Under the pieces are notes generated by a model that saw only the letters and a list, made by a program, of their open reading frames with translations, did not search any database and was not told the origin of the DNA. Positions 2,808 to 62,686 of a DNA stretch of 64,000 nt are shown piece by piece (position 1 is the stretch's first letter; every line of letters starts with the position of its first letter). The translations under genes and the position numbers were made by a program. Source of the DNA: Octopus sinensis (taxonomy: Eukaryota). Location: NCBI RefSeq assembly GCF_006345805.1, contig NC_043010.1:60450001-60514000 (forward strand). The letters run 5' to 3'.

Positions 2808-5207
2808 ATGATAAGAAATATTCTTTCACTATATTTGCTAGACATGCTACTGTTCTCTGTTGTGTCTTTAGACATTACCTACCATATCAATGAAGAAAAC
2901 AGCCCTCATGCCTACATAGGAGATATTGCTGCTGATTCTAATATGTCACATTTTTTTAAACATCAACAACACAATCTTGTTACGTTTACACAATTACAAA
3001 GGAAGGTGTCAAGTGGCTCTCATCTATTTAATGTCACCAACTTAGGGAAACTTTACACAACTCAGACACTGGATGCTGAATCTTTGTGTACAATCAACAA
3101 AGAATGTTTCAAAATTGTTAGGATAGCAGTTCGGAAAAGAAAAACCTATGTAAAGATTTTAAAAGTCAAAGTAATCATAAAAGACATCAATGATCATGGA
3201 CCTGAGTTTCCAGAAAGTGAAATAAATTTGCAATTTGATGAAAATGATCGGGAAGGAACTAAAAAGCCAATTCCAAATGCTATTGATAGAGATATTACCA
3301 TTCAGAATTCTAGGATAACTTATGAACTGAAGGAAAATATAGATGACCCATTTTCATTGTCTCTTTCAAAAGACTATGATGGGACTTTCATACCTGAGAT
3401 AGTTCTACAAGGTAAGCTGGATAGAGAAAGAAAGAAACATTATATGTTAAAGCTGATTGCTAAAGATAATGGTATACCACCAAATGAAAATATTTTACAT
3501 TTTCAGATATCTGTAACTGACTCTAATGATAATAAACCATTATTTTCTCAAAAAGTATATAACATTTCAATAAAGAATAAACACCCCAAATCAAAACCAA
3601 TTTTAGTTTTAGAAGCCACAGATTTAGATTCAGGGACAAATGGAAAGATTGCCTTTAATTATAGTCCCAAAACACCAATTGAAATAAGAAAATATTTTGA
3701 TTTGAAAAAGGCATCTGGAGAATTGTTTGTAAATGAGTACTTTAAAATAGATACCAAAAACTCTTACAAGCTGTTTGTTGAGGCTAAAGATGGAGGGAAA
3801 CCTCCCTTAAGTTCAACAACAGTGATTTTGATTTCTAAAGAAAGCAATCATAATATTGCTCCAAAAATTGATATAGACTTTGTGTTTCCTTTGTCAGAAA
3901 GTTCGACTGCTCTTTTAGAAGACATTAAAGTTAGTAGTTTTATAGCTTATGTCATAATTACTGACAATGATATTGAAGAAAATGGACAGATTGATTGTAA
4001 TTTGGAACATGAAACCTTTGGAATAGTTGAAATGGGTTCACATGAATATAAAATGACCACAAAATGTCCTCTTGACAGAGAAACAAAAGATCGCTATGAT
4101 ATTGTACTTGTTTGCCAGGATATGGGATTTCCACCACTCAAATCAGAAAAACAATTTTCTATTGAAGTACTTGATGTCAATGATGTAGAGCCACATTTTA
4201 CCAAAGAGACATTCCAATTCCTCACCTATGAAAACCAGAAAGTTGACTTCCCTATTGGCTTCATCAATGCTACAGACCCTGATCTTGGAGATGGAGGCCA
4301 ACTTACATATTCTATCATCAATGATAACAACAATGATAACATTCCTTTCCAACTGACAAAATATGGATTTTTTTCTACATCACAATCAATAGATCGAGAA
4401 ATGAAAGACATCTATAAGTTCAAGGTTTTAGTGAAAGATAAGGGAACACCTTCACTCAATGACACTGCCAATATTGTTATCGAGATTCTAGATAAAAATG
4501 ATAATGCTCCATATTTTACGTTTCCTAATAATGACCCTTACAATCTAGATGTCCACTACCATCCAAACAGTAAAAAGGACATCACAATTCTGAAAGCATC
4601 TGACAAAGACACTGGAAACAATGCTTTCCTCACATATGGAATATTAAAATCTAATGATAAAAACATGCTAACGGTAAATTCTTACACTGGGGTATTATCA
4701 TTCTCTCGTATAATTAATATAAATGATGCTGGAACGTATGAGCTACAGTTCATGGTGAAAGACAGTGGTACTCCAGTTCAATCAGCAACAACTGTTATCA
4801 TGCTAACACTGCATGTTAGTAATGATACACTTCCAATGCAAGCTGCAACCCATCTCTTATCTGGCACTGACTTAAACATAATTTGGGTAATAATCATTGT
4901 GGCAGCAGGAGTAATACTATCTGTGGGTATTGTAGTTTGCTTAACAATGTGTGTTTTCAGATGTATTAATCACATTAAAAGTTCACCTTCAACTTCAGAT
5001 AATCATAAAATCCTGACAGGCTCTAAGATGAGGCCAATGCCATATGAAACTAACAACCCTATTGCATTTACAAGAAATACAGAAGACACATATAACAGAA
5101 ATTGTCAGACAATGAGCTCAAAAAGTCATTATTACCCTGAGATGGAAAAGACTATCAATGAAGGCAAATTTTCAGCAACAGCTAGAAAACTTCCACCAAT
5201 TCCACAG
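2808..5207 (+). CDS. Protocadherin A, large coding exon (signal peptide, EC1-EC6, TM, proximal tail)
   Basis: 811-aa ORF with hydrophobic leader, cadherin motifs (DINDHGPEF, LDRE, DSNDNKP, DVNDVEP, DKNDNAP), EC1 C-x5-C (CTINKEC) typical of protocadherins, and TM IIWVIIIVAAGVILSVGIVVCL. Phase-0 donor CAG|GTTGGT at 5207/5208, homologous to the donors in genes C and D. Confidence 0.95.
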
Positions 5208-5448
5208 GTTGGTAAAATTTATAACATTCCTTTTATAGCTTAAATTCCCAGACGTTTTAACCTCATTCTGTATTTTTTAAGATTTACATTATATTTTAAT
5301 TAATTTAATCCCTGATCATCTCATGTACTACATTCCAAATATAAATGCATTTTTAAGGCTTAATCAGAGTGTTTATTTCTAATACTGAGTTTCAAACTTT
5401 AAACAACTGTGCCTCTACCCCAACTTTTGAAATATGATACCACTTTTT

Positions 5449-5751
5449 GTTGTTGTTCCTTCTCGAGCCATGTCTGGCTCATAAGGGCCCGTTTCCCGGT
5501 TTCCTTGGCATATAGGTTCCCCATCTGGATGGGACACCAGTCCGTGGCAGGTAAGCTGCAAGATGCAAGAGGAAAGAGTGAGGGCAAGTTATGGCAAAAG
5601 AGTCAGCAGAAGTTCGCCATTACCTTCTGCCGGAGCTGCCTAGAGCTAGGTGTTTCACTCATAAACACACACATTGCTCAGTATGAGATTCGAACCCACA
5701 ATCCCTCAACCGCGAGTCCGCTGCTCTAACCACTGGGCCATGTGCCTCCAC
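5449..5751 (-). mobile_element. tRNA-derived SINE
   Basis: Minus strand starts GGAGGCACATGGCCCAGTGGTTAGAGC...GGTTCGAATC (Pol III A and B boxes) and ends in an (AAC)n-like tail. Confidence 0.75.
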
Positions 5752-5899
5752 ACATGATACCACTTGAAACAATGTACAGCATGCATATGATATATGAAAT
5801 TAATAGTACAGAAAATTTTCATCATTACCACAATAACATATACCAAAAATCTAAACATATTTTTCAGACTTTTAGTTATATCTACCCTAGTTTCAAGCA

Positions 5900-8070
5900 C
5901 TAACCCAATGGTAAATGGAAAAGTATGCCATTTGCAGTACCAATAATATGGCACAAACCAACAAACCACTAAACTGATTGTTATTTCTGCTTAACTAACA
6001 TCACAAGTTTCTCTGAGAAGAACAAATCCAAGATTGTTTATCCAGATTGCCCTTCAGCTTTAAAACCAGTTGCTCATGCTGTTGAAAATATTCCAATTCC
6101 AGAGCCTCTTTCATCTTTTGACAAAGATATTTTAAGTGAAGATAGTGCTGCATCTACTTCAACTGAAGGCATGCTGAGTGATACAGCAGATCACTGTGAT
6201 GAACCAGGATCTTCAAAAAAAGTTCCTCATTTATGAAGTCAACTTGAGTTAAATGATTTAGTTAGAGACTTGGGTTTAACAAAAGAAAAGTCAGAACTAC
6301 TGTGTTCCAGGTTGAAACAATGGAATCTTTTACACGATTTTATATAATGCTCGTATTTTCGAAAACGGCATACAGAATTGCATGAAATTTTTACAGAGAA
6401 AGATGGGATTTGTTTTTGTGTGATGTTGAAGGACTCCTATATGAGATGGGGTACAGCCATAATACTGAAGGATGGAGATTCTTCATAGATTCCAGTAAAG
6501 TAAGTCTAAAAGCTGTTTTGCTGCATAATGGCAATCAAAAACCTTCAATACCACTAGCACATGCTGTAGGATAAAAGGAAACTTAATGAATCACTGGATG
6601 AAATTTTGCACTTGATTAAATATTCTGAGCACAAGTGGAATATATGTGGGAACTTGAAAGTTATTGGTTTGCTTCATGGGTTGTAAATGGGGTATACAAA
6701 GCATCAGAGCTTTTGTGCCTTTGAAACAGCAGAGATGACTAGCATCACTATGACCAAAAAGAGTGGCCAAAAAGAAGTGATTTCACTTCAGGGAGATACA
6801 ATGTTAAATATATCCCTTTAGTTGACCTCAGAAAATTTACCTTCCTCCCTTACACATTAAACTTGGCTTGTTTAAGAATTTTGTTAAGGTCATAGATGAA
6901 GACGGTGAAGGATTCAAATATCTCGATGAAAAATTTGTTTTTAGCAAGTGTGAAGCTAAGATCAAATCTGGTGTTTTTAATGGACCAGAAATTTACACAC
7001 TAAGGCGCAGGAGTGGCTGTGTGGTAAGTAGCTTGCTTACCAACCACATGGTTCCGGGTTCAGTCCCACTGCGTGGCACCTTGGGCAAGTGTCTTCTACT
7101 ATAGCCTCGGGCCGACCAAAGCCTTGTGAGTGGATTTGGTAGACGGAAACTGAAAGAAGCCCATCGTATATATGTATATATATATATGTGTGTGTTTGTG
7201 TGTCTTTGTTTGTCCCCCTAGCATTGCTTGACAACCGATGCTGGTGTGTTTATGTCCCCGTCACTTAGCAGTTCGGCAAAAGAGACCGATAGAATAAGTA
7301 CTGGGCTTACAAAGAATAAGTCCCGGGGTTGAGTTGCTCGACTAAAGGCGATGCTCCAGCATAGCCGCAGTCAAATGACTGAAACAAGTAAAAGAGTAAA
7401 AGAGTAATTTGTGAAGAGCTTTTTCAAGAAAAATTAAACCCAGTAGAGAAAACTCCTTGGGAAAAGTTTGTTTCTCTTGGAAAAAATTTTTGGGAAATGA
7501 AAAATCATCTAATTCCATTGCAATTGTGAATAATTTTTTGATAGCTTATAAGCAACTTAGGGCAAGATGTCTCTAAAAATTCATTTTCTCCACTCTCATC
7601 TTGACTTTTTTCCATCCAATATGGGTGATGTAAGTGATGAGCATGGTGAATGATTTCATCAAGAAATCAAAGAGTTAAAAAGCCACTACAGTGGCAAACT
7701 TACACTAAACATACGGATGGAATACTGCTGGTTTTAAAATGAGAAATGGACATGCAACATAAGCATAAAAAAAGACACCAAAGCTATTTTTAAAACACAT
7801 AAAATTAATAATATTCACTTCACACTTTTGCTTTGTGTTTTATTGGTTTTAGAGCTATTTGTCCACCTAGTTGCAATTGTTCTTAAATCAAATAACAGTA
7901 ATTTATGCTTAACATAACATTTTATTTGTCATGAATTTTCTCACTATTGTAATTTTGATAGCAGTATAATAATGATAGCAAAAACCCCCCCAAAAAACAG
8001 GACATGCTAGAGCAAAAATATGTATGAGCTCTATTTCATCTAGTAGTAGCAAAACTTTTGTTGCTGAGTG
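5900..8070 (+). mobile_element. Degenerate Chapaev3-like DNA transposon in Pcdh-A intron
   Basis: Broken-frame transposase motifs MPFAVPIIW..P.NH.TDCYFC, ELNDLVRDLGL.KEKSELL, FIDSSKVSLKAVLLHNGN, LPPLHIKLGL, HSHLDFF..NMGDVSDEHGE. It ends TTTTGTTGCTGAGTG at 8070, resembling a CAC...GTG terminus. The family name is recalled from motif similarity; the 5' boundary is approximate. Confidence 0.75.
7005..7406 (+). mobile_element. tRNA-derived SINE (family A) nested in the Chapaev3-like element
   Basis: GGCGCAGGAGTGGCTGTGTGGTAAG head, GGTTCAGTCCC B-box-like motif, internal TA/TG microsatellite, (GTAAAAGA)n tail. Relatives at 20823, 29391, 38623, 39575 and 52912. Confidence 0.85.
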
Positions 8071-8135
8071 TTATGAAAGAGTCCTAATAAATATACCAAT
8101 TAAAATAGCATTCTAAATGTTTCTTTTAACTTCAG

Positions 8136-8298
8136 TCTATTGATCAGCCAAGTAAGGAGTCTTCTGATGAGCATGGAGAAACTATATCTACTAAGAGTAT
8201 CAATTATATGAGTAATACATTGCCATGCCAATGGCCATCTGAAAGTACCTGGGATGAAAGATATACAAGAAATTTCAGTGATATTTCTATTACATCAG
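8136..8298 (+). CDS. Protocadherin A, cytoplasmic exon 2
   Basis: Acceptor TTCTTTTAACTTCAG, 163 nt open in phase 0 (SIDQPSKESSDEHG...RNFSDISITS), donor CAG|GTAATT in phase 1. Same 0-to-1 phase pattern as the equivalent exon in C and D. Confidence 0.75.
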
Positions 8299-8906
8299 GT
8301 AATTTGTGAATTATATTCTTTTTTTTAAGAGTTCTGTATGATTTTAGCATTTCTCTAAGTTGTAATTAATTTCAAATGATTAATGTGAAAATTGTAAAGT
8401 TAAAAAAGAGAATACAAAATAATGATACTACAAAAGTAGTATACAACTGCATTAGAGATTCATAAGAATAAATTTTGTTTGGTACTAAGGTGATCTAACA
8501 TATTATTTCATATTTGTTTATTCACATGCTCTCATTGCACTTTAACATCTTCTGCTGCCTGATCTATGATAGGAGTCAGTATGTAAGAGTTTAAGTTTAC
8601 AAATCAGACTGCTAGCACTCAGTACCAAAACATATACATATGTAATATATTATATATTTTTTATTTAATCTAAGGTTTGACAGTATCCATTGATTCTGTT
8701 AGCTCTCATAGACTGGTGAAACAGATGAGGCTAATACTCAGCTTGAACTTCTGTAGGCTACTGTCAGAATACAGCAGTTCTGGGAAGAAAGAATTGCGTG
8801 AAATGATTTGTAAAAAATTTTCTTAAAAATAATTGGCTAAAATATGTAATATCATTATTTAGCAAATGTTCCTGTTCTATGAGAAAATGTTGAGAATTAA
8901 ATAAAA

Positions 8907-13600: not shown

Positions 13601-13731
13601 TACCATGTATGTAAAATGTGAGTTGAGGGTACTTTTATTCAGCAATATGCATGTGTGCAAGTAGTTAGATGTATTTGAAAAGTAGTTAACGTAAAGATGA
13701 AATATTGCACCCAAGTTAATTAAATGAAGGT

Positions 13732-13828
13732 CAGAGAGAGGAAGAGAGAGGAGTGAGGGGGAGAGAGAGGGAGAGAGAGAGGAAGAGAGAGGGGAGAGAG
13801 AGAGAGGGAAAGAAGGAGAGAGAGAAAG
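13732..13828. repeat. (GA)n-rich simple repeat
   Basis: Imperfect GAGAGAGG/GGAGA array. Confidence 0.9.
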
Positions 13829-27141: not shown

Positions 27142-27180
<39 letters not shown>

Positions 27181-32059: not shown

Positions 32060-32783
32060 ACACGGGATTGATATATTCCTACAGATGATACTAAAATGAT
32101 AAGGCAATTTAATACCTCCATTAAAGCAGACGATATTAAAACAATATGGAAATTTAATATTTCTATTAAAGCAGATGGTATTGAAACAATATGGAAATTT
32201 AATATTTCCTTGGGAACAGACGATACAAAACAATGAAGCAATTTAATATTTTCATTAAAGCAGACAATAGTAACAGAATATGGAAATTTAATATCTCCAT
32301 TAAAGGAAACGATATTAAAACAATTTAATATTTCCATTAAAGGAAACGATATTAAAACAATTTAATATTTCCATTAATGTAGACGATACTAAAACAATGT
32401 AGCAATTTATTATTTTCATTAAAGCAGACGATACTAAATCATACGGCAATTTAATATTTCCATGAAAGCAGACGATACTAAAACAATGTTGCAATTTAAA
32501 ATTTCCATGAAAGCAGACGATATTAAAACAATTTAATATTTCCATTAAAGGAAACGATATTAAAACAATATAAAAATTTAATATTTCCATTAAAGGAAAT
32601 GGTATTAAAACAATTCGATATTTCCATTAAAGCAGACGATACTAAAACAAAATGGCCATTTAATATTTCCATTAAAACAGACAACAATAAAACAATGTAG
32701 CAATTTGATATTTCCATTAAAGGAAACGATACCAAAACAATATAAAAATTTAATATTTCCATTAGAGCAGACGACAATAAAAC
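32060..32783 (-). repeat. 45-bp minisatellite, short array
   Basis: Reverse complement of the unit ATCGTCTGCTTTAATGGAAATATTAAATTTCCATATTGTTTTAGT; some units are ~35 bp. Confidence 0.92.
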
Positions 32784-35639: not shown

Positions 35640-36630
35640 TTAATATTTTGAAAACGATGTGGAATTTTAAGAACTCAAGAGTCATCTCCCTTGCAACATT
35701 TGTCGTCTGCGTTCCGTCAGCAGACGCTCTTCGCCGTCGATGAAAGATCGTAAAATTCGTCTCCTTTGATTTCTAATTTTATATTGTTGCAAAATTAATT
35801 TAGGAAAATGTTTTCAATATGGATATTTACATGTAAAGGCAAAGAGTGAGTAATGATATTAATTTCTGATATATCTTACGAGTTTTGACTGATATTTTGT
35901 GAATTTCTAACAATGCTTGATAATCCTTTTTTATAAAAAAAAAAAAAGGGAGGATTCTTTATTAATTGCTAAAAAGAAAACTTGTTAATATTTCATAGTT
36001 TGATAATCAAAAAAAGTTTTATTCATAAATCGAAAAAAAAAAAAGTCTTTATAAAGTGCTAAAAAGAAATTCAGAGAAGCTCCATAAGTTCTTTGTTTCC
36101 TTTCTTCTTTTTTTACTAACATTTCATTAACGGTGTTTAAATAATGTTGCTTAAAAAATTCGAAGTACTTCCATTGCCAACTTTGGAGCAGTTTTATTGT
36201 CGTCTGCTCTAATGGAAATATTAAATTTTTATATTGTTTTGGTATCGTTTCCTTTAATGGAAATATCAAATTGCTACATTGTTTTATTGTTGTCTGTTTT
36301 AATGGAAATATTAAATGGCCATTTTGTTTTAGTATCGTCTGCTTTAATGGAAATATCGAATTGTTTTAATACCATTTCCTTTAATGGAAATATTAAATTT
36401 TTATATTGTTTTAATATCGTTTCCTTTAATGGAAATATTAAATTGTTTTAATATCGTCTGCTTTCATGGAAATTTTAAATTGCAACATTGTTTTAGTATC
36501 GTCTGCTTTCATGGAAATATTAAATTGCCGTATGATTTAGTATCGTCTGCTTTAATGAAAATAATAAATTGCTACATTGTTTTAGTATCGTCTACATTAA
36601 TGGAAATATTAAATTGTTTTAATATCGTCT
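35637..36630 (-). repeat. Inverted duplicate of ~32344-33334
   Basis: Mirror ORFs in the track are nearly identical (32705+ vs 35985-, 32523- vs 36197+, 32315- vs 36384+); only a few substitutions and poly-A/T length differences by eye. Confidence 0.95.
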
Positions 36631-38196
36631 GCTTTCATGGAAATATTAAATTGCTACATTGTTTTAGTATCGTCTGCTTTAATGGAAATATTAAATTTCC
36701 ATATTGTTTTAGTATCGTTTGCTTTAATGAAAATATTATATTGCTACATTGTTTTAGTATCGTCTGCTTTAATGGAAATATTAAATTTCCATATTCTGTT
36801 ACTATCGTCTGCTTTAATGAAAATATTAAATTTCCATATTGTTTTAGTATCGTTTGCTTTAATGAAAATATTATATTGCTACATTGTTTTAGTATCGTCT
36901 GCTTTAATGGAAATATTAAATTTCCATATTGTTTTAGTATCGTCTGCTTTAATGAAAATATTAAATTGCAACATTGTTTTAATATCGTCTGCTTTAATGG
37001 AAATATTACATTTTTATATTGTTTCCATATTGTGTTACTATCGTCTGCTTTAATGAAAATAATAAATTTCCATATTGTTTTAATATCGTCTGCTTTAATG
37101 AAAATATTATATTGCTACATTGTTTTAGTATCGTCTGCTTTAATGGAAATATTAAATTTCCATATTGTTTTACTATCGTCTGCTTTAATGGAAATATTAA
37201 ATTGCCATATTGTTTTAGTATCGTTTGCTTTAATGAAAATATTATATTGCTACATTGTTTTAGTATCGTCTGCTTTAATGGAAATATTAAATTTCCATAT
37301 TGTTTTACTATCGTCTGCTTTAATGGAAATATTAAATTGCCATATTGTTTTAGTATCGTTTGCTTTAATAAAAATATTATATTGCTACATTGTTTTAGTA
37401 TCGTCTGCTTTAATGGAAATATTAAATTTCCATATTGTTTTACTATCGTCTGCTTTAATGAAAATATTAAATTTCCATATTGTTTTAGTATCGTTTGCTT
37501 TAATGAAAATATTATATTGCTACATTGTTTTAGTATCGTCTGCTTTAATGGAAATATTAAATTTCCATATTGTTTTACTATCGTCTGCTTTAATGGAAAT
37601 ATTAAATTGCCATATTGTTTTAATATCATCTGCTTTAATGAAAATATTATATTGCTACATTGTTTTAGTATCGTTTGCTTTAATGGAAATATTAAATTTC
37701 CATATTGTTTTACTATCGTCTGCTTTAATGTAAATATTAAATTGCCATATTGTTTTAATATCATCTGCTTTAATGAAAATATTATATTGCTACATTGTTT
37801 TAGTATCGTCTGCTTTAATAAAAATATTAAATTGCTACATTAGTTCACTATCGTCTGCTTTAATGAAAATATTAAATTGCCATATTGTTTTAATATCATC
37901 TGCTTTAATGGAAATATTAAATCGCTACATTGTTTTAGTATCATCTGCTTTAATGAAAATATTATATTGCTATATTGTTTTACTATCGTCTGCTTTAATG
38001 AAAATATTAAATTGCCATATTGTTTTAATATCATCTGCTTTAATGAAAATATTAAATTTCCATATCGTTTTAATATCGTCTGCTTTCATGGAAATATTAA
38101 ATTGCTACATTGTTTTAGTATCGTCTGCTTTAATGAAAATATTAAATTGCCATATCGTTTTAATATTGTCTGCTTTAATAGAAATATTAAATTTTC
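36191..38196 (+). repeat. 45-bp minisatellite, long array with 135-bp higher-order repeat
   Basis: About 2 kb of 45-bp units; translation shows 15-aa periodicity cycling through three variants. Confidence 0.95.
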
Positions 38197-39949: not shown

Positions 39950-42440
39950 GACTGTACTGCACTGGCAATTACATTGGAACTTTATGCAGAAAATTTTAAG
40001 CAAAAGATAATAAAAGATTCTGTTCCAAAGAAGGGTATTTTAAATATTAATGTGTACATGTGTCAAATGTTAATAAAAATCAACTATAGTTTTCTAAACT
40101 ATTAACATCTCGTAATAAAAAATATACAGGGTTTAGATATAACAAAATGGACAAAGAGTTCATATTTTAACTATAATTTATCCTTCAGTTTATTTCTAGC
40201 TTGTAGATAGAAATTTTAAAATAAATCATTTAGATTTGCTAGAGAATTTTTTGTACCTTCTTTATTAATGTTACAGTTCTTCAGATTATAGTGTCTGTCA
40301 CAATTCACTGATCATTATTCTGTTTACTTTTTTAGCTTGTGGTGCAATAATTAATAATGATGTTGGACATAATGGGGATGTTACATTCTATTATTAGAAG
40401 ACACTTTGACAAAGAAACATCTGTTGTATATCATGACCTGGAATCATCTCTGTTAAAGACTAAGAAACAGTTCTCTGTCAAAGTAACTGATGTCAATGAT
40501 GTAGAACCACATTTTACCAAAGAGACATTCCAATTCCTCACCTATGAAAACCAGAAAGTTGATTTCCCTATTGGCTTCATCAATGCTACAGACCCTGATC
40601 TTGGAGATGGAGGCCAACTTACATATTCTATCATCAAGGAAAATAATAATGATAACATTCCTTTCCAACTGACAAAATATGGATTCATTTCTACATCACA
40701 ATCAATAGATCGAGAAATGAAAGACATCTATAAGTTCAAGGTTTTAGTGAAAGATAATGGAACACCTTCTCTCAATGACACTGCCAATATTGTTATTGAG
40801 ATTCTAGATAAAAATGATAATGCTCCGTATTTTACGTTTCCTAATAATGACCCTTACAATCTAGATGTCCACTACCATCCACACAGTAAGAAGGACATCA
40901 CAATTCTGAAAGCATCTGACAAAGACACTGGAAACAATGCTTTCCTCACATATGGAATACTGAGATCCATCATCATCATCATTTCATGTCGGTTTTCCAT
41001 GCTGGCATGGGTTGCACAGTTTGACAGGAGCTATCTGTTTTGGCTGGATTTCTACAGCTGGATGTCCTACTTAGTACCAACCACTTTACAGAGTGTGCTG
41101 GGTGCTGAACTTACACGCTGATGTGTTATATTTCTCAGACAATTTACCAAAATGTTTCAGAAACATATGAGCTGACCTTAGCAAGTGATGTAATAGCACT
41201 GCTAACACAATAGAACATGGTATTGACTTAAAAAAACATTTACTCTACTTTGTAATATATTGTGGTTGCATAACAAAATACCATGTTCTTAAAGTCTTTA
41301 ATATTAGCTGGAGTTTATAGTGGTACTCCAGTTCAATCAGCAACAACTGCTATCATACTAACACTGTTTGTTAGTAATGTTACATCTTCAATGTTGACTG
41401 CTGTGCCATTCCAGTCTGGTCACGACCTGAATATGACTTGGATAATTATCATTGTAGCAGCAGCTGTAATAGTATCTGTGGCTATTGTAGTGTCCATAAC
41501 ACTGTGTGTTTTCAGATGTATTAATCACACAAATAACGCACCTACAACAGCAGAGAATCCCAACTTTCTCTCTCAGACTGAGATGAGACAATTGCAAGAA
41601 ATGCAGAAGAGATATTTAACTGAAATCTTCAGACAATAGAGTTTAAAAGTCAGTTTTTTCTGGAGATGGAACAGACACCAGATGAGAGGAAATTCTGAAC
41701 AACACAGAGGAGACTTCTCACCTGTTCCTCAGGTAAATATCATTTTATGTCTCTGATATCCTTTTGATTTTAAATGCAAAAGTATTTTAGTGATTATTCA
41801 CACATGTTCAAATATTTATATAAATTATCAATTTTAGAAACTCATGTGTATGAGCAGTTTTATTCCTTTGCTTAAAATTTATTGTTTATCTGTGACTTTC
41901 TGAATTAATTATTCATTTTTGTTTAGTGATACTTAAACAGTTTCAATGCCTATTATAGAAATACAACACTTTTTATATAATGACTGTTTTATTAGGTAAG
42001 ATCTAGATTTGTATCAATATAATTTTTTATCTTTTCTATAATCAACTGAGATATGTTTCTATCCATAGTCGAGAAGGTCACATCAGTTCCAACCTGTCTA
42101 ACTACAACAGTGACACCTTAACATCCCAAAAGGACAGAGAAGCTAGCAAGAGTAATGGCAAGACTAAACCATATGATGAGATACCTGCAGAACCAGGTAA
42201 CTTTTATCGAAACATAACATATAAATGTAATTGCCTTTATTACTGTAGGACAATATATAATGTTATGCTTAGTGTAATATAAGATCAATGTTTCTATCTT
42301 TATATATTGGAGTTGTTATATTGAAATGTAATTTGTGTTTGTATATTTGATATTTTGCAGAATATACCAATGACAATCCAGTGGCAGCCACAATACTAAA
42401 GGGACAGCAAATACAAGATACCTTTCTACAGCCAACATAG
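39950..42440 (+). pseudogene. Protocadherin pseudogene (psi-Pcdh-B)
   Basis: Decayed EC2-EC4 traces (IKDSVPKKGILNINV, NVNKNQL*FSK, NNDVGHNGDV then a frameshift to HFDKE). Intact EC5 block 40471-40968, RTE-tail insertion at 40969, 131-bp insertion at 41175, 10-nt deletion near 41320, deletion near 41595, exon-2 acceptor AG changed to TG near 42047. Terminal exon 42361-42440 intact apart from Y to F. Confidence 0.88.
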
Positions 42441-45818: not shown

Positions 45819-47156
45819 GTGTTGCTACTGCATAAATCTCTCTGAGAGATTTAGAAATGCCTTATTTCTATTTTCAAAAATTAGTTGAAATAAGTTCAGG
45901 GAGTTATTAACTCTGCTCATAACAAAATGGTTCTCTCTGAGAATGAAAGGCAGATTGTATAATGCATGTGTACAAAATACAATGCTGCATGGTAGAGACA
46001 CATGGAGCCTGAATACAGAGGATTTCTAAAAGCTAGAAAGAAACGAAGCTTGCTCCACTGGATTTGTAATGTTAAGTGCTTGAGCAGTAGAAAACAAATG
46101 GGGTAAAAGAAAAACTGAATGTAATAGAAATTAGATGTAGTATGCAAGAGAGTGTTGACTACTTGAAGTAGTTGGAATATGTTGAAGAGGAGACCCTGGA
46201 AGACATGGACCAAAGTGGTGATGACGAAACTCATAAAAGAAATGATTTTAAAAAATATGATGAATGATGACTCATGGTGGTGATGGCTGCATTTCGGTCA
46301 CTTACCCAGTGTATTCTTGTTATGTTTCCATCTACCGCTATTTACATTACCCTTTCATCTATCACTCTATCTCCATGTCACCTGTATAACTATGAATAGT
46401 ATTTCATGTGTCTGGATTTAACCCTTCCACCATCACTCCTTATCGCTCTTCTAACATAAGACCCTTTTTATTTAAGGGAATTTTTTCCGCAACTCCCATA
46501 CTTTTCAAAAATTTATGTATTCAACAAGCTGATTTTAGTAACTAATAGCCAGTCATTTTCACAGTTTTATTTCACAACTGAATAATATATGTACCTGAAT
46601 ATGTTACTGAATACATCACATTAACCAAAGACCAAAATCACTTATTTAATAAGAAAGCTGATGCTGCTCTTGACGCAGGGGTAAGAATTTTAGATGCAAA
46701 CACAGACACTTTTAAGCTTAAGTCATGTTTTAAAAATTGTCTAAAAAACTTGAACTCTTTCTGTAGATTTAGAAAGTATTTTGAAAATCTTAGTTTGTCT
46801 TGATCAGCCTTATTGTGATTAAATATGCATTTTACAATGCAGAATCCTCAAATTTAGGTCTTCGTTCAAGGTTCTCCTGCTTTACTTTAGCAGGTTCACA
46901 GGCTCCTTTGGATGCTAGGCTGGAAACCAATTTATAGCTTATTGCTGACAAAATAATTTTGAAATTCAAATCAAATACACATTTATGTATGTTAAACCTG
47001 AACTATATATTGCAAGAATGAATCACTTAGCAAAACTGTTTTTAGAAAAAATTTTGCTCACTGACATATATTTAATCTTACTTTGTCTCTGTTTGTAATT
47101 TTTACCTATTGTAATTCTAGAAATATCTCATAGGAGAGTAATGACGACCTACAGAC

Positions 47157-49559
47157 ATGAATGGAAATATCATTTACCTGGTGTGTTTGCTACAATTACG
47201 ACAGTCTCTTGTACTGTCCATAGATATTACATACCATGTCAAGGAAGAAGGCAGTCCTCACACCTATATAGGAGACATTGCTGTTGACTCCAACTTATCA
47301 TACCCTCTCACACATCAACAACACACTCTCATTACATTTACACAACTACAAAGGACAGTTGAAAGTGGTTCTCACTTATTTAATGTCACCAACTCAGGAA
47401 AACTATACACTACTCAAACACTGGATGCTGAGTCTCTGTGTACATACAACAAGGAATGTTCCAGAATTGTTAAAGTAGCAGTAAGGGAAAATAAAAGATT
47501 TCTGAAGATCCTGAAGGTGAAAATAATAATAGAAGACATCAATGATCATTCTCCAGAATTTTCTATTGATAAAATCACTGTTAAATATACTGAAGATAGT
47601 TTTAAAGGAACCAGAAGGATAATTCCATTTGCCATAGATAGGGATATAACCATCTTGAATTCCCAAATTTCATATAAAATAATGGCTAGTCAAAGAGATC
47701 CATTTTCTTTGTACATGAAAAAACAAAATGATGGTGCCTTCATACCTCAACTTATTCTTGAAGAAACATTAGACAGAGAAGTCAAAGACTCATATATGTT
47801 GACCCTGGAAGCTAAAGATGGAGGGAACCCTCCCAAAACAGCTACACTCAAGGTACACATATCTGTGACAGACGTCAATGATAACACACCTGTATTTTCA
47901 CAGAAAGTCTACAATGTCTCTATAAGCAATTCACATCAAAGACATTTACCAATTCTTACTTTAAAAGCAACAGATAGAGATTCTGGACACAATGGAAAGA
48001 TTTCTTACCATTTCAACCATAAAACTCCCATTCTGTTCCAGAAATATTTTTTATTAAAGAGAACTAATGGTGAGATATATTTAAAAGATAATTTTAGTTT
48101 TGGTGGAAAACATACATACAAATTATACATTGAAGCACAAGATGATGGGAGTCCCTCCCTAAGTTCTGTAACAATGGTACAGATTCACGTAATTAGTAAC
48201 CAAAATTCTGCTCCCATGATAAATATAGATTTTGTATCTCCTTTATCAGAGAGTTCCACAGCAGTTTCAGAAGACAGTGAAGTAGATAGTTTTATAGCTT
48301 ATGTTATGGTCACCGACAATGATAGTGGACCTAATGGTGAGGTTAGCTGTGATTTAAAACATGATAAATTTAAACTTGCCAAAATGGATTCTAAAGAATA
48401 TAAAATAATTGTTAAGGGCCACCTTGACAGAGAAATAAGGGACCATTATAAAGTATCTGTTGTGTGTCGTGATATGGGGTCACCTCAACTAGAAAGTAAA
48501 AAATATTTCTCTGTCAAAGTAACTGATGTCAATGATGTAGAACCACATTTTACCAAAGAGACATTCCAATTCCTCACCTATGAAAACCAGAAAGTTGACT
48601 TCCCTATTGGCTTCATCAATGCTACAGACCCTGATCTTGGAGATGGAGGCCAACTTACATATTCTATCATCAGTGATAACAACAATGATAACATTCCTTT
48701 CCAACTGACAAAATATGGATTCATTTCTACATCACATCCAATAGATCGAGAAATGAAAGACATCTATAAGTTCAAGGTTTCAGTGAAAGATAATGGAACA
48801 CCTTCTCTGAATGACACTGCCAATATTGTTATTGAGATTCTAGATAAAAATGATAATGCTCCGTATTTTACGTTTCCTAATAATGACCCTTACAATCTAG
48901 ATGTCCACTACCATCCACACAGTAAGAAGGACATCACAATTCTGAGAGCATCTGACAAAGACACTGGAAACAATGCTTTCCTCACATATGGAATACTGAG
49001 ATCCAATGATAAAAACCTGTTTACAGTGAACTCACACACTGGTGTGTTATCTTTCTCTCGCACAGTTTACCAAAATGATGCAGGAACATATGAGCTGCAG
49101 TTTATAGTGAAAGACGGTGGTACTCCAGTTCAATCAGCAACAACTGCTATCATACTAACACTGTTTGTTAGTAATGATACATCTCCAATGTTGACTGCTG
49201 TGCCATTCCAGTCTGGTCACGACCTGAATATGACTTGGGTAATTATCATTGTAGCAGCAGCTGTAATACTATCTGTGGCTATTGTAGTGTCCATAACACT
49301 GTGTGTTTTCAGATGTATTAATCACACAAATAACTCACCCACAACAGCAGAGAATCCCAACTTTCTCTCTCAGACTGAGATGAGACAATTACTGTATCAG
49401 ACCAACAATCCTGTTGCAATAACGAGAAATGCAGAAGAGATATTTAACCGAAATCTTCAGACAATAAAATCTAAAAGTCAGTTTTTTCTGGAGATGGAAC
49501 AGACACCAGATGAATGGAAATTCTCAACAACACAAAGGAGACTTCCACCTGTGCCTCAG
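47157..49559 (+). CDS. Protocadherin C, large coding exon
   Basis: 813-aa ORF with signal peptide, six EC repeats, C-x5-C in EC1 and TM. Acceptor CTAG|AAATAT at 47120/47121; phase-0 donor CAG|GTAAAT at 49559/49560. Confidence 0.95.
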
Positions 49560-49935
49560 GTAAATATTATTTTAAACAATTCTATGGCATATTTTTGAAA
49601 CATTCATCAAAATATATTTGAAATCTCTTATTTTATATACATGTTATGTTCTTTATGCCTTCTCCATAAAACATAATGGCTCTTTCATATTTTTACAATT
49701 TACAGAATTCATAAATCTAAAATTTCCATATATTTCATTAAACTAGTATCTCTGTTTTGTTTATTGTCTACTCCAAGTTATTTTCATTAACTAAGACTGT
49801 CTTCAATTATACTGTTTCTGCTCATTTTAAAAGCATTCCTCTCTTGTGTCTTACCAGAAACATTCTAGAATACAAATATATATGTTTCTTCTTTTTAACA
49901 TTATGCTTCACTCTGCTTTTTTTTCTAATCACCAG

Positions 49936-50080
49936 AGATGTGATTCAATCCATAGTCAAGGACGTCGTACCAGTTCCATCATGTCTTACAACAGTGACAC
50001 CTTAACATCCCAAAAGGACAGAGAAGCTAGCAAGAGTAATGGCAAGACTAAACCATATGATGAGATACCTGCAGAACCAG
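49936..50080 (+). CDS. Protocadherin C, cytoplasmic exon 2
   Basis: Acceptor TTTTCTAATCACCAG, 145 nt open (RCDSIHSQGRRTSS...KPYDEIPAEP), donor CAG|GTAACT in phase 1. Confidence 0.85.
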
Positions 50081-50244
50081 GTAACTTTTATCAAAACATA
50101 ACATATAAATGTAATTGCCTTTATTACTGTAGGACAATATATAATGTTATGCTTAGTGTAATACAAGATCAATGTTTCTATCTTTATATATTGGAGTTGT
50201 TATATTGAAATGTAATTTGTGTTTGTATATTTGATATTTTGCAG

Positions 50245-50324
50245 AATATACCAATGACAATCCAGTTGCAGCCACAATACTAAAGGGACAACAAATACAA
50301 GATACCTATCTACAGCCAACATAG
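50245..50324 (+). CDS. Protocadherin C, terminal coding exon
   Basis: Acceptor ATATTTTGCAG; (E)YTNDNPVAATILKGQQIQDTYLQPT*. Predicted spliced protein is 875 aa. Confidence 0.85.
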
Positions 50325-51229
50325 TAGATGTTCCATGACTATTGTTAAATGATTCTCTCACACACCAAATCTTATACAATACTTTATATTCATATAAAAA
50401 TATCAACTCTATGTTTCTTTCACACATCACACATAAAGGGCCTTGCAGGGCATCTATTATGACCCTTGATTTACATCTCTGATACATGAAATACTACAAA
50501 TACCCTTCTCTATATTATCATTGATGACAGTATATTGGGCTCATTGTATGTTATATTTAATTTGCTAAGCTCCTGTTTTAGTGTAATTCTAATTTCTATA
50601 TTTACATCATCCATTTGTAGCATAAAACAAAATAAAAGTTTTGCTATTATATCATTTAACTAACGATCTTAATCTGGAGGTTCTGCAGAATGTTGACATA
50701 TCTTGTAGTATCCACACCATCTGAGAGGAGAGTAACAATAAATTTAGCATAATTTGAAGTAAAGTGAAATTTAAATGAAATATTATCAGATCTAGTGTTG
50801 AATTTCGATTTAGTAAATCTTAAGAATACTCCCCAAATTAAATACATTCCTACACTAAACACTTTTAGTTTGTCCATTAAAATGTAGCTATATGAATATT
50901 TCATATAAATAATAAAATACAATTTTTATGCAGCATTTTGCTTAATTTACATTTACTGTTGTCACCTAATAGCTGTTGTTTAGATTTCTTTTTGCCACGT
51001 TTGTAGCAACGATGTCTATTTCTTTAACTAACATTGAATTTTTTGTTGTTACAAGGATCTTTTTATTGCTAGGATATACTATAATCTGTTTAATATTAAA
51101 AAATAAGTAATAACAGAACTAAATAGGATACTCCTCGATTAATCACACTATCTATAAAATATATGAATGATAATTGCACATAATTCATCAAACAGCCTCT
51201 GTTTAACATCAATTCTCTTATTTGATGTG

Positions 51230-51748: not shown

Positions 51749-51780
<32 letters not shown>

Positions 51781-57699: not shown

Positions 57700-60004
57700 T
57701 GTATCAGATTGCCAGAAGGAAAGCTAGGAGATAGGTTTACTTAGCCAGAGGGAAAACAGATAAAAAATTCTGCATCATGAAGACCAAAGACTTGAAGTGT
57801 TTAGTGTTGCAAGACTGTTTTGAGAGAGAATCATGATGTCATAGGAGAGACTTGGAGATGCCACTATGAAAGGTTGCTAAATGAAGAGAATGAATGGGAA
57901 AAAGAGTCTATCAATTGTCAACCAAACAGAGGGACCAGCTATCCAAATTGACAGTACCTTGGTAGATAAAGCAATTAAGGGTATGAAGATAGGGAATGCC
58001 CCCAGCCCATCAGGAATCACCACAGAGATGCTTAAAATATCTGGCAGTGTTGGCTATAGTCTAGTCAGTCGTATAGTTAGTCAGGTGATACATGAAGGAG
58101 TCATACACAATGGCTGGTGTAGCAGCACCATAGTCAACTGCTACAAAGGTAAATGCGATGCATTGGATACAAATAATTAGAGGTATCAAGTCGTTGGTTC
58201 AGGTAATGAAAGTTACAGAAAGGGACATAGGGTGAGAGTTAGTTTAGATGAAATGCAGTTTGGGTTTGTGCCAGGGAAAAGTACCACTTATGCTATATTT
58301 CTGGTAAGATAGCTGCAGGGGAAATACCTAGCCAAAGATAAACCTCTGTACTTGGCTTTTGTTGACATGGAGAAAGCCTTTGACAGTGTCCCCCGATCCC
58401 TTATCTGGTGGTCAGTGCAAAAACTAGAGATGGATGAGTGGTTAGTGAGAGCTGTACAAGCCATGTACAGGGGTGCTGACAATAAGGTGAGGGTTGGCAA
58501 CAAGTATATTGAAGAATTCCATGTAGGAGTAGGGGTCCACCAAAAATCAATCCTCAGCCCTCTCTTATTTATCATAGCCCTCCAGGCAATAACAGAGAAA
58601 TTCAATACAGGCTGCCTCTGGGAGTTTCTCTGTGTTGATGACCTTGCTCTAATAGCTGAGTCACTATCAGAACTAGAGAAGTTTCATGTGTGGAAGTAAG
58701 GTCTAGAATCGAAGGGCCTTAGAGTCAATCTAGCAAAAACCAAAGTCTTAATAAGTAGGAAGGCAGACAAATCACAAATCCCTCCAGGTAGATGGCCCTG
58801 CTTGATTTATAGAAAAGGCATAGGTAGAAACTCCATAAGATGTACCTGGTGTAAGCTATGGACACATAAGAGGGGCAGCAATATCAAAAGAAGGCTAACT
58901 GAGAAGATAGTTTTTGTGTGGCAAATGCTCAGGGGCAACAAACACTGAAGATGTTCAGAAAACAGCTTCTGTCACTTGCTAGGGGGAAAAACTAGAAGTA
59001 GTTGATAGCTTCCATTATCTAGGTGGTCAAGTCAGTTGCAGGGCTGGATGCTCTGAGAGTGTAGCTGCGACAATAAGAATAATCTGGGCAAAGTTCAGAG
59101 AACTCCTACCTCTGCTGGTAACAAAGGGCCTCTCTTGCTCAGAGTAAAGGGTAGACTCTATGGTGCATGTGTGTGAACAGCCATGCTACACAGCAGTCAA
59201 ACATGGGCTATGACTGCTGAGGACATGCATAAGCTTGCAAGAAATTAACTTAGTATGCTCTGCTGGATGTGTAACGTCAGTGTGTATACACGACAGAGTG
59301 TATCGCCCTGAGAGAAAAATTGGACATAAGAAACATCAAATGTGGTGTGCAAGAGAGACGAATGTGCTGGTATGGTCATGTGCTGCATATGGATGAAGAC
59401 AGCTGTGTGAAAAAGTGTCACATCCTAGCAGTAGAGAAAACCTGTGGAAGTGGTAAACCCAGGAAGACGTGGGATGAGGTGGTGAAGTACAACCTTTGAA
59501 CATTGGAACTCAAGGAGGCAATGATGAGTGACCGAGACCTTTGGAGATATGCTGTGCTTGAGAAGACCTGGCAAGCCAAGTGAGACCATAACGTTGCCTA
59601 TGCCAGTGCAGCACAATCGGCCCATTTAAGAATACCCTTCAATTACTGGGCAATAAATGGTGCTTTCGAAGACCTGTTGAGTCAAGTGAAGTCATTGTCG
59701 TGCCCGATGCCAGTACCACCTGAGTGGCACTCGTGCTGGTGGTACGTAAAGAGCACCATTCGAGCGTGTTCGATGCCAGTGCTGCCTAACTGGTTCTGTG
59801 CTGGTGGTACATAAAAAGCACCATTCAAGCATGGTCGTTGTCAGACTGGCCCTCGTGCCGGTAGCACATAAAAAGCACGCACTACACTCTTGGAGTAGTT
59901 AGCATTAGGAAGGGCATCCAGCTGTAGAAACTTTTGCCAGATCAAACTGTCCAACCCATGCCAGCATGGAAAGCGGACGTTAAACGACGTTGAGCAGGAT
60001 GATG
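57700..60004 (+). mobile_element. 5'-truncated RTE-like LINE in the 5' intron of Pcdh-D
   Basis: Same family as 8907-11359: AFVDMEKAFDSVP, GVHQKSILSPLLFII, LCVDDLAL; 3' UTR repeats and GGACGTTAAACGA end; multiple stops. Confidence 0.85.
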
Positions 60005-60289
60005 TATAAAATTTTTGAAAGAACGCTTCAGATGAGTATTGTTTACAACGTCTAGGGGAGATAACTCTAATGTAAATCCGGACTATTTCTTCACACTAAC
60101 AGGAACACATAAAAACTTACTTTTAATGACTTTCTTTCACAATTTTCAAATATATTTCTATTGTATAGTACTCCAAGGTTTATATTTGATGAACTTTCAT
60201 GTCAAATTTTTTCTTTAAGCTGGTATTAAATAATTTCTATTATATTTGTAGAAATATTCAATAATAATGAAGAATGAAGAGTTGCAATC

Positions 60290-62686
60290 ATGAATGAAAA
60301 CGTTTTTTACTTGGTGTGTTTGCTATATATAAAACAGTCTGTTGTAATGTCTGTAGACATCACCTACCACGTCAAGGAAGAAGACAGACCTCACACCTAT
60401 ATAGGAGACATTGCTGTTGACTCCAACTTATCACACCCTCTCAAACATGAGCAACGCGCTCTCATTACACTTACACAACTACAAAGGACAGTCGAGAGTG
60501 GTTCTCACTTATTTAATGTCACCAACTCAGGAAAACTATACACTACTCAAACACTGGATGCTGAGTCTCTGTGTACATACAACAAGGAATGTTCCAGAAT
60601 AGTTAAAGTAGCAGTGAGGAAAGGAAAAACTTTCATGAAGATTTTGAAGGTGAAAATAATAATAGAAGACATCAATGACTATTCTCCAGAATTTACGGAT
60701 GATGAAATAGGTATCAAGTTTGCAGAAGATAGTCTGAAAGGAAATCAGAAAAAAATTCCATATGCTATAGACAGAGATATTACCATCATGAATTCCCAAA
60801 TTTCATATAACATAAAATATCATAAAAGAGAACCATTTTCTTTGTATATGGCAAAAGATAATGATGGTGTTTTTACACCTGAACTGACTTTAGAAGACAA
60901 ATTAGACAGGGAAGTAAAAGATTTGTATATATTGACCTTAGAGGCTAAAGATGGTGGGAACCCTCCCAGAACAGGTACACTCAAGGTACGCATATCTGTG
61001 ACAGATGTTAATGATAACACACCTGTATTTTCACAGAAACTCTATAATATCTCTATAAATAATTCACATCAAAGACATTTACCAATTCTTACTTTAAAAG
61101 CCACAGATCAAGATTCTGGAGACAATGGAAAGATTTCTTACCATTTCAACCATAAAACATCTCAAAATATCCAGAAATATTTTGTATTGGATAAGAAAAC
61201 TGGAGATTTATTTTTACATGATAATTTTTACTTTAGTAAGATGCAGTCTTTATTTATAGAAGCAAGAGATGGTGGGAATCCACCTCTAACGTCGGTAGCC
61301 AGAATTCACATTTATGTAATTAATAACCAAAACAATGTTCCGTTGATAAATATAGATTTTGTGTCTCCTTTAACAGAGAGTTCCACTGCAGTTTCAGAAG
61401 ACAGTGAAGTAGATAGTTTTATAGCTTATGTTATGGTCACTGACAATGATAGTGGACCTAATGGTGAGGTTATCTGTGATTTAAAACATGATAAATTTAA
61501 ACTTGCCAAAATAGATTCTAAAGAATATAAGATAATTATTAAGGGCCATCTTGACAGAGAAATAAGGGACCACTATAAAGTATCTATTGTGTGTCATGAC
61601 ATGGGGTCACCTCAACTAGAAAGTAAAAAATATTTCTCTGTCAAAGTAACTGATGTCAATGATGTAGAACCACATTTTACCAAAGAGACATTCCAATTCC
61701 TCACCTATGAAAACCAGAAAGTTGACTTCCCTATTGGCTTCATCAATGCTACAGACCCTGATCTTGGAGATGGAGGCCAACTTACATATTCTATCATCAA
61801 TGATAACAACAATGATAACATTCCTTTCCAACTGACAAAATATGGATTTATTTCTACATCACAACCAATAGATCGAGAAATGAAAGACATCTATAAGTTC
61901 AAGGTTTTAGTGAAAGATAATGGAACACCTTCTCTCAATGACACTGCCAATATTGTTATTGAGATTCTAGATAAAAATGATAATGCTCCGTATTTTACGT
62001 TTCCTAATAATGACCCATACAATCTCGATGTCCACTACCATCCACACAGTAAGAAGGACATCACAATTCTGAGAGCATCTGACAAAGACACTGGAAACAA
62101 TGCTTTCCTCACATATGGAATACTGAGATCCAATGATAAAAACCTGTTTACAGTGAACTCACACACTGGTGTGTTATCTTTCTCTCGCACAGTTTACCAA
62201 AATGATGCAGGAACATATGAGCTGCAGTTTATAGTGAAAGACGGTGGTACTCCAGTTCAATCAGCAACAACTGCTATAATACTAACACTGTTTGTTAGTA
62301 ATGATACATCTCCAATGTTGACTGCTGTGCCATTCCAGTCTGGTCACGACCTGAATATGACTTGGGTAATTATCATTGTAGCAGCAGCTGTAATACTATC
62401 TGTGGCTATTGTAGTGTCCATAACACTGTGTGTTTTCAGATGTATTAATCACACAAATAACTCACCCACAACAGCAGAGAATCCCAACTTTCTCTCTCAG
62501 ACTGAGATGAGACAATTACTGTATCAGACCAACAATCCTGTTGCAATAACGAGAAATGCAGAAGAGATATTTAACCGAAATCTTCAGACAATAAAATCTA
62601 AAAGTCAGTTTTTTCTGGAGATGGAACAGACACCAGATGAATGGAAATTCTCAACAACACAAAGGAGACTTCCACCTGTGCCTCAG
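60290..62686 (+). CDS. Protocadherin D, large coding exon
   Basis: 809-aa ORF with the same architecture as C. Acceptor TTTGTAG|AAATAT at 60251/60252; phase-0 donor at 62686/62687. Confidence 0.95.

Follow-up and report, generated by a model that had tools for sequence, protein, structure and literature searches.

The EC3-EC4 junction in a protocadherin array

The 64 kb window analysed here (the whole stretch of 64,000 nucleotides, positions 60,450,001 to 60,514,000 of the forward strand of contig NC_043010.1, Octopus sinensis assembly GCF_006345805.1) is an octopus protocadherin (Pcdh) array, with three genes on the same (+) strand and one truncated copy. Cephalopod Pcdhs are a textbook neuronal adhesion family, expanded independently of the vertebrate one. 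This work deals with a single joint of the encoded proteins, the one between the third and the fourth extracellular cadherin repeats (EC3 and EC4), where an original prediction, made from the DNA of the window, had claimed the loss of the Ca2+-binding motifs in all three proteins. We found that three of the five motifs, XEX, DRE and DXNDN, are lost, and that the other two, DXD and XDX, are intact.

All three open reading frames (ORFs) encode a signal peptide, six cadherin repeats, a transmembrane helix and a short tail, and the three proteins are collinear with PcdhgB4, PCDH10 and PCDH8.1 over EC1-6. The Pfam Cadherin domain was found in five stretches per protein (E 1e-65 to 5e-74), while Cadherin_2 matched EC1 above its curated cut-off in genes 2 and 3 and scored 22.9 bits in gene 1, against a cut-off of 23 bits. 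The hydrophobic stretch WVIIIVAAAVILSVAIVVSITLCVF after EC6 is the single membrane-spanning segment, and the three proteins gave no Pfam match to Cadherin_C, the classical catenin-binding tail. The nearest database proteins are “protocadherin beta-15-like” entries of Octopus vulgaris and O. sinensis, including one O. vulgaris entry 100% identical over 76% of the query.

The three proteins had been described as intact. The ORFs are indeed open, but they correspond to large first exons that are read through a CAG/GT splice donor and followed by short downstream exons. The donors lie at 5202-5210 in gene 1 (donor about 5207), 49554-49562 in gene 2 (CAG/GTAAAT, directly past 49559) and 62681-62689 in gene 3 (past 62686). 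The short exons of gene 2 agree at 100% with the protein tails of P0001 and P0015 (O. vulgaris and O. sinensis); the O. sinensis relative P0001 is ~873 aa long, and the real proteins extend into two short gene-specific exons. No exons downstream of gene 1 were matched by the protein tails tried. Cephalopod Pcdh genes have been published as multi-exon and fully duplicated, in agreement with the genes of the window (PMC9068888).

Table 1. Features of the window, with positions counted from its first nucleotide.
Feature	Position	Strand	Details
Pcdh gene 1, large first exon	2808-5243	+	Signal peptide, EC1-EC6, transmembrane helix, start of cytoplasmic tail; ORF and Pfam
Pcdh gene 2, large first exon	47157-49559	+	ORF continues to 49598
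Pcdh gene 3, large first exon	60290-62686	+	ORF continues to 62719
Gene 2, exon 2 / exon 3	49933-50079 / 50244-50321	+	Short, cytoplasmic tail; from tails of related proteins
Gene 3, exon 2 / exon 3	63144-63290 / 63455-63532	+	Short
Gene 1, EC3 (in frame)	3546-3869	+	XEX SIKNK 3567-3581; DRE FKID 3741-3752; linker SNHNIAP 3843-3863
Gene 2, EC3	47898-48221	+	XEX SISNS 47919-47933; DRE FSFG 48093-48104; linker SNQNSAP 48195-48215
Gene 3, EC3	61031-61348	+	XEX SINNS 61052-61066; DRE FYFS 61226-61237; linker NNQNNVP 61322-61342
Gene 1, EC4 top-side ligands kept	3960-4127	+	TDNDIEENG 3960-3986; CQDMG 4113-4127
Gene 2, EC4 top-side ligands kept	48312-48479	+	TDNDSGPNG 48312-48338; CRDMG 48465-48479
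Gene 3, EC4 top-side ligands kept	61439-61606	+	TDNDSGPNG 61439-61465; CHDMG 61592-61606
5'-truncated Pcdh copy, late EC4 to tail	40390-42437	+	First part 40390-41747; exons 2 and 3 at 42049-42195 and 42360-42437; homology

The positions of the single motifs are reported in Table 1. The Glu position of XEX is Lys, Ser and Asn in genes 1, 2 and 3, respectively, and the Asp and Glu of DRE (or DYE), as well as the DXNDN linker, are missing in each gene. Conversely, DXD (TDNDxxxNG, with the Asn of DxDxGxN) and XDX (C[QRH]DMG) are present in all three. At linker position 4, the former central Asp, the codons are AAT (3852-3854), AAT (48204-48206) and AAC (61331-61333); AAT is also found at linker position 1 of gene 3, and the Lys at the XEX of gene 1 is encoded by AAG (3573-3575). 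The motifs were located where the original prediction had placed them, with slips of 1-2 nt in the EC3 limits: the interval 3545-3870 is out of frame and contains stops, and the other two are in frame and 1-2 nt too long. The remaining four inter-EC linkers are canonical or near (DAE for DRE in EC1; DINDHSP; DVNDVEP).

A mis-registered alignment could mimic such a loss, and it was ruled out by two observations. In the secondary structure of an AlphaFold2 (AF2) model, the altered residues lie where strand A ends, in the E-F loop and directly past strand G, which are the expected sites of XEX, DRE and DXNDN; coherently, the HMMER alignment to the solved vertebrate Pcdhs, with which the proteins are collinear, places them opposite E, DFE/DYE and D[VI]NDNAP.

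Conservation of the junction in coleoids and in other animals

The junction was compared in two sets of coleoid Pcdhs. The octopod set (n=123) includes the three window proteins and 120 Pcdhs of O. vulgaris, O. sinensis, O. bimaculoides and Argonauta hians, with 48-100% identity. The decapodiform set (n=122) was built on the 120 best matches to one query, chosen from the cephalopod-like proteins (n=3) met in a bivalve-seeded search, and its named members are from Acanthosepion pharaonis. The acidic base-side ligands at EC3-EC4 amount on average to 0.51 out of five per protein in octopods and to 0.18 out of five in decapodiforms, against 4.7-5.0 out of five at the other four linkers of the same proteins, which had been correctly described as canonical or nearly so; this contrast goes far beyond chance. 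The three top-side ligands have a mean of 2.98 out of three, the same as at the other linkers.

At position 4 of the linker, Asn replaces the central Asp of DXNDN in all 245 proteins (123/123 octopod and 122/122 decapodiform). The Pro at position 7 is equally invariant (245/245), the Asn at position 5 is present in about 82%, and the replacement linker is conserved as N-x-[Q/H]-N-N-[A/P]-P. Position 1 is N113/S8/D2 in octopods and N100/S15 in decapodiforms, being acidic in about 2% of the coleoid Pcdhs, and position 3 is Q55/H43/K10/R8 in octopods and Q97 in decapodiforms. The XEX Glu position is more variable (S38/K32/R17/E15 in octopods, K70/N16/R16/E5 in decapodiforms), and an acidic residue occupies the Asp and the Glu position of DRE in 8% and 28% of octopods, respectively, against 6% for either position in decapodiforms. 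On the EC4 side, the octopod counts are D123/D122 for DXD, N123 for the Asn and D121 for XDX, the decapodiform ones are 120-122 out of 122, and overall the DXD and XDX positions are kept in 98-100% of the 245 proteins.

Thus, the loss of ligands at EC3-EC4 is conserved family-wide in the sampled proteins (245/245) and is not sporadic, as had been anticipated, and the survey rules out a quirk of this cluster. Decay under relaxed constraint, or copies on their way to becoming pseudogenes, would give the change no structural meaning, and could account for the XEX and DRE positions varying among paralogues. This explanation is contradicted by the conservation data and we give it almost no credit: the ORFs are intact, the EC4 ligands are invariant, the linker is a new conserved motif and the state is common to octopods and decapodiforms. 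Moreover, an Asn codon is one transition away from Asp, yet none of the 245 paralogues has reverted, which shows that the new state is selected.

Two further features of these proteins were observed. The XEX position of EC3 is Lys or Arg in 49 of the 123 octopod and 86 of the 122 decapodiform Pcdhs, and this fixed positive charge might be a stand-in for the absent Ca2+ against the remaining EC4 carboxylates. At the EC4-EC5 linker (4173-4193, 48525-48545 and 61652-61672), the sequence is DVNDV[E/Q/R]P, with Val for the last Asn, in 118/123 octopod and 105/122 decapodiform proteins; the Val form is absent in other molluscs and vertebrates, being a coleoid signature. As the last position of DXNDN ligates Ca2+ via the backbone in the canonical scheme, this Val is presumably harmless.

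Outside cephalopods, a search of 1.84 billion representative proteins returned mostly giant Fat/Dachsous-type cadherins and fused vertebrate Pcdh arrays, and no squid sequences; it yielded 14 vertebrate units and a seed from the bivalve Tegillarca granosa. The clustered-Pcdh units, from lungfish, manta ray and coelacanth, are canonical at EC3-EC4 in 14 cases out of 14, as are 27 of 31 further vertebrate proteins (the rest being three misaligned or truncated entries and one bird with DINNHVP). The solved delta2 and clustered Pcdhs are also canonical there (xEN, LDFE/LDYE, DxNDNAP), so that the canonical state extends over vertebrate clustered, delta1 and delta2 proteins, and the EC3-EC4 junction of PCDH1 carries three Ca2+ (PMC6769022), the number present there in all the clustered and delta Pcdhs solved so far. 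Several of these public gene models are fused: KAJ8298477.1 of Tegillarca granosa (P0255) joins two seven-EC Pcdhs, and P0124, P0147, P0150 and P0214, annotated as “Fat 4-like” or “cadherin-23-like” in lungfish, manta ray and coelacanth, each contain between two and six of the units detected.

Neither this cluster nor the cephalopods are alone in having the trait, a milder version of which is common among the Pcdhs of bivalves and gastropods. The Tegillarca model shows an intermediate state (SVNEDI / LKYE / DVHNNPP). Among 83 non-cephalopod invertebrate relatives, 61 carry the milder form D-x-x-N-[N/S/T]-x-P and 22 are fully canonical; those named among the 61 belong to the bivalves and gastropods Mytilus, Mizuhopecten, Saccostrea, Sinanodonta, Mya, Lottia, Biomphalaria, Bulinus and Lymnaea. 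Sequences with the milder form have Asn at position 4 without exception (61/61) and nearly always retain Asp1 (59/61); the Glu of XEX is preserved, and the Asp of DRE has gone in most of them. The junction thus eroded earlier than the coleoid expansion or more broadly than in coleoids alone, and coleoids went further, having also lost the XEX Glu and Asp1. The BLAST identity to cephalopods is 33-36% for all invertebrate groups and is not discriminating on origin. In a neighbour-joining (NJ) tree (129 taxa, junction columns masked, 100 bootstraps), the monophyly of cephalopods, here coleoids, is supported at 100%, the sister-group position of seven canonical invertebrate sequences at 64%, and the deeper nodes at 14-25%.

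The distribution of the Asn at position 4 also bears on adenosine-to-inosine (A-to-I) editing, which in coleoids could restore acidic ligands in some transcripts (AAY to GAY, AAR to GAR) and make the stiffness of the joint tunable. The Asn and Lys codons of the window genes at linker position 4, at position 1 of gene 3 and at the XEX of gene 1 are all editable, and an enrichment of editing in cephalopod Pcdhs has been reported (bioRxiv 10.1101/714394). No evidence that these codons are edited was found. Against it, Asn is found at position 4 in all the decapodiform proteins, read assemblies included, which argues against editing at majority level, and the residues at the DRE position (Phe, Ser, Thr, Leu, Gly) are not editable back to Asp or Glu. 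In addition, the same Asn is equally invariant in the 61 bivalve and gastropod sequences, and to our knowledge these animals are not known for mass recoding. A restoring role of editing is therefore very improbable.

Domain variability, gene mosaicism and other features of the window

The mean pairwise identity among the 123 octopod Pcdhs is 0.60 in EC1, 0.53 in EC2, 0.49 in EC3, 0.595 in EC4, 0.69 in EC5 and 0.70 in EC6. Diversity thus peaks in EC2 and EC3, with EC4 intermediate, and the joint does adjoin the variable domain, as had been stated. Vertebrate clustered Pcdhs reportedly show the same EC2/EC3 peak, according to the structures of Rubinstein, Goodman and Nicoludis. The peak mildly favours a conserved antiparallel EC1-EC4 binding mode over a new geometry.

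A division into a variable EC1-3 arm and a homogenised EC4-6 stalk had also been proposed, and it holds for genes 2 and 3. These are 93-100% identical from EC4 to the tail, third codon positions included, and 65-71% identical in EC2 and EC3. The two genes form a mosaic (47106-50378 vs 60237-63589) whose hot spots of divergence span roughly codons 100-230 and 290-350, where a stretch of 60 nt can differ at as many as 25 sites. The switch to near identity occurs at codons 343-362, corresponding to the EC3-EC4 linker, and downstream of it the genes are nearly identical, introns and 3' exons included. The boundary of a likely conversion or duplication tract therefore falls at the EC3-EC4 linker. 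The proposed division fails for gene 1, whose EC4 is only 55-57% identical to those of genes 2 and 3 and in which EC5 is the homogenised domain. Indeed, EC5 (about 4191-4508, 48540-48857 and 61667-61984) is 94-97% identical at the amino acid level and 96-98% at the nucleotide level among the three genes, third codon positions included; coupled with the divergence of EC4 in gene 1, such identity hints at gene conversion over a short tract with EC5 at its centre.

The truncated copy aligns from query residue 418 and is without EC1-EC3; as it also misses the junction, it is uninformative on EC3-EC4. It is probably a partial duplication or a pseudogene, and fragments of this type have been reported in cephalopod Pcdh arrays (PMC9068888). 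Elsewhere in the window, a 45-bp AT-rich satellite with 44.8 copies and a shorter reverse-complement array (32082-32783 and 36191-38193) flank ~3.4 kb without recognisable domains, and a 449-aa ORF at 36384-37733 is a repeat artefact. The region 58001-60000, directly upstream of gene 3, is GC-rich (45% vs ~33% in the window) and has a positive GC skew.

Calcium binding and geometry of the junction, compared with known systems

The ligands for Ca2+ sites 1 and 2 (XEX Glu, DRE Asp and Glu of EC3, Asp1 and Asp4 of DXNDN) are lost, and those that the top of EC4 gives to site 3 (both Asp of DXD, the Asn of DxDxGxN and the Asp of XDX) are kept. Sites 1 and 2 are thus abolished at the level of the ligands, and site 3 is probably retained. 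The explanation we favour, and regard as fairly likely, takes the octopus EC3-EC4 junction for a partial Ca2+-free linker, conserved and of the same type as PCDH15 EC5-6, with one Ca2+ and a softer joint; it is read in this way because its motifs match those of PCDH15 EC5-6 and not those of PCDH15 EC9-10 or DN-cadherin. The junction would bind one Ca2+ instead of three and, though extended on average, would be less stiff and more flexible than the other four, canonical ones. This would place a soft spot between EC3, the most variable domain, and EC4, inside the EC1-EC4 module used for antiparallel trans binding in vertebrates. As the trait is common to coleoid Pcdhs and exists in a milder form in bivalves and gastropods, the three genes inherited it rather than acquired it.

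No cephalopod Pcdh structure was found in the PDB by sequence, and the geometry was evaluated on two AF2 models: one of EC1-EC6 (109-sequence alignment; predicted local distance difference test score, pLDDT, 82.7; predicted template modelling score, pTM, 0.52) and one of EC3-EC4 (150-sequence alignment; pLDDT 92.5, pTM 0.61). The former superposes on the vertebrate EC3-6 crystals (gammaB2, gammaB7 and PCDH19) with a template modelling (TM) score of 0.72-0.80 and a root-mean-square deviation (rmsd) of 5-6 A. The latter, in which ions are ignored, superposes on canonical EC3-4 pairs with a TM score of 0.55-0.72 and an rmsd of 4-6 A, and is extended with no 90-degree kink. The EC1-4 crystals fit the EC1-6 model poorly (TM score about 0.42) because the model kinks upstream, within EC1-EC3 and at canonical linkers, which is likely an artefact. 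For this reason the EC1-6 model was dropped as a test of bending, and only the EC3-6 and EC3-4 comparisons were kept, as weak evidence. Both models speak, weakly, against a fixed sharp bend at EC3-EC4, flexibility being outside the reach of AF2.

These data bear on a stronger version of the hypothesis, in which the junction is a fully Ca2+-free hinge or a fixed bend of the DN-cadherin EC2-3 or PCDH15 EC9-10 type, giving a geometry unlike the straight vertebrate EC1-EC4 dimer. In its favour, every coleoid Pcdh sampled has lost the three motifs, the linker residue at position 3, itself a ligand of site 3, has changed too, and the junction adjoins the most variable domain; moreover, the Ca2+-free linkers of DN-cadherin and PCDH15 bend, and in DE- and DN-cadherin they lie in specificity-determining ECs (PMC8325961, PMC5120219). 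Conversely, DXD, the Asn of DxDxGxN and XDX, lost in PCDH15 EC9-10, are invariant across the coleoid set, EC3-EC4 is extended in both AF2 models and superposable on vertebrate EC3-6 and EC3-4, and the EC2/EC3 diversity peak shared with vertebrate clustered Pcdhs fits a conserved EC1-4 binding mode. We thus consider a fully ion-free hinge unlikely. The bent Ca2+-free junctions invoked in the original prediction were not the right precedent: with the site-3 motifs of EC4 invariant, the fitting case is the partial linker of PCDH15 EC5-6. We regard as equally doubtful that a working hinge, with one calcium or none, gives coleoids a trans-recognition architecture unlike the straight antiparallel EC1-EC4 dimer, one that might be tunable by A-to-I editing.

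At the opposite extreme, the junction could hold two or three Ca2+ through alternative ligands (Asn/Gln carbonyls, backbone oxygens or water) and be as straight and rigid as a canonical one. Asn, whose carbonyl oxygen can ligate, occupies position 4 in every protein and often positions 1 and 5 as well, and the geometry of the AF2 models resembles the canonical one. Binding would be favoured by the high Ca2+ content of sea water and of the blood of molluscs, extracellular concentrations being roughly 10 mM in the marine ones. On the other hand, sites 1 and 2 normally take four or five carboxylates, of which 0-1 remain, and the Lys or Arg so frequent at XEX puts there a cation that disfavours Ca2+. 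PCDH15 linkers with milder losses are already at one or two ions, with weaker affinity (PMC7547225). Such a compensation seems to us rather improbable.

Some points weigh against the single-ion explanation that we favour. Linker position 3, the canonical site-3 side chain, has changed from Asn to Gln, His or Lys, and site 3 may be weakened or rebuilt by this change; the ion number itself is a prediction from motifs. The interdomain geometry is weak evidence, since AF2 models no ions and places kinks at the canonical EC1-EC3 linkers. The sample consists of the 120 best matches for each of two queries, with Nautilus and more divergent coleoid Pcdhs outside it, and the NJ tree does not separate one from two origins of the cephalopod and the bivalve/gastropod states.

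Partial and complete Ca2+-free linkers are a known class; its fixation at EC3-EC4 throughout the coleoid Pcdhs, alongside a milder state in other molluscs, adds a new and apparently unreported case. Indeed, no prior description of a Ca2+-poor EC3-EC4 joint in coleoids was found in the searchable literature, the papers of Albertin 2015, Wang & Ragsdale 2017 and Jin 2012 being outside the search. The observation is solid and its conservation striking, while the consequences for mechanics and recognition are inferred, and a changed recognition geometry is possible. A Ca2+-poor joint inside the EC1-EC4 recognition module would be a concrete and testable structural difference from vertebrate Pcdhs, which predicts one ion rather than three, higher flexibility and possibly an altered trans or cis geometry. 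The trait, which squid and cuttlefish have too, pre-dates the octopus arrays and is thus part of the scaffold underlying the expansion, rather than the oddity of one cluster. If the hinge hypothesis were true, two independently expanded neuronal “barcode” families would have different binding geometries.

Among the known systems, the closest at the motif level is PCDH15 EC5-6, where XEX is modified, DRE is absent, PPNNQ stands for DXNDN, and DXD and XDX are kept (Choudhary et al. 2020, PMC7547225). That linker is flexible, with several interdomain orientations, and the only Ca2+ it binds sits at site 3, while the less degraded EC3-4 of the same protein holds two ions with weaker affinity (PMC7547225). 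The octopus junction shares with EC5-6 the modified XEX, the absent DRE, the central Asp replaced by Asn and the DXD and XDX kept in the next repeat. It differs in that PCDH15 is an 11-EC tip-link protein and the repeat pair is another one, in that PCDH15 keeps Asn3 where cephalopods have Gln or His, and in role, elasticity of a filament under force vs a homophilic recognition module; the occupancy of the octopus junction is, moreover, deduced from its motifs.

The complete Ca2+-free linkers are less similar. The one of DN-cadherin EC2-3 was reportedly described by Jin and colleagues in 2012. Like the octopus junction, it and PCDH15 EC9-10 have lost XEX, DRE and DXNDN, with conservation within their families, and they are used as bending points; unlike it, they have also lost DXD and XDX, bind no Ca2+ and bend by ~90 degrees, whereas the octopus junction keeps its EC4 ligands and is modelled as extended. 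In PCDH15 EC9-10, fully Ca2+-free and with a ~90-degree bend, the two motifs read AIN and DSL (PMC5120219). DE-cadherin EC2-3 and DN-cadherin EC7-8, examples of complete and partial Ca2+-free linkers, lie inside specificity-determining ECs, and their bending was seen by high-speed atomic force microscopy (PMC8325961). The likeness to octopus is thus a conserved Ca2+-poor joint within specificity-linked repeats; the difference is that these are classical (type III and IV) cadherins with another binding architecture.

The vertebrate Pcdhs (PcdhgB4 6e6b, PCDH10 6vg4, PCDH19 6pgw and PCDH1 6bx7) are six- or seven-EC homologues with 30-35% identity and E-values down to 4e-91. Vertebrate clustered and delta Pcdhs resemble the octopus ones in the single large ectodomain exon, in the tandem arrays and in having EC2 and EC3 as the most diverse repeats, and a long A-strand segment of EC4 is common to octopus and delta Pcdhs. 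In contrast, the EC3-EC4 junctions examined in vertebrates are canonical, with three Ca2+ in PCDH1, and cephalopod genes have their own short 3' exons vs the shared constant exons of vertebrates (PMC9068888). Finally, the delta-like Pcdhs of bivalves and gastropods, Tegillarca included, share with cephalopods the invariant Asn4, the replacement of Asn3, the loss of the DRE Asp and the conservation of DXD and XDX in EC4. The Tegillarca Pcdh, the only one of these checked for its number of repeats, has seven ECs. Unlike cephalopods, the bivalve and gastropod proteins retain Asp1 and the Glu of XEX, so that two ions may still be bound there.

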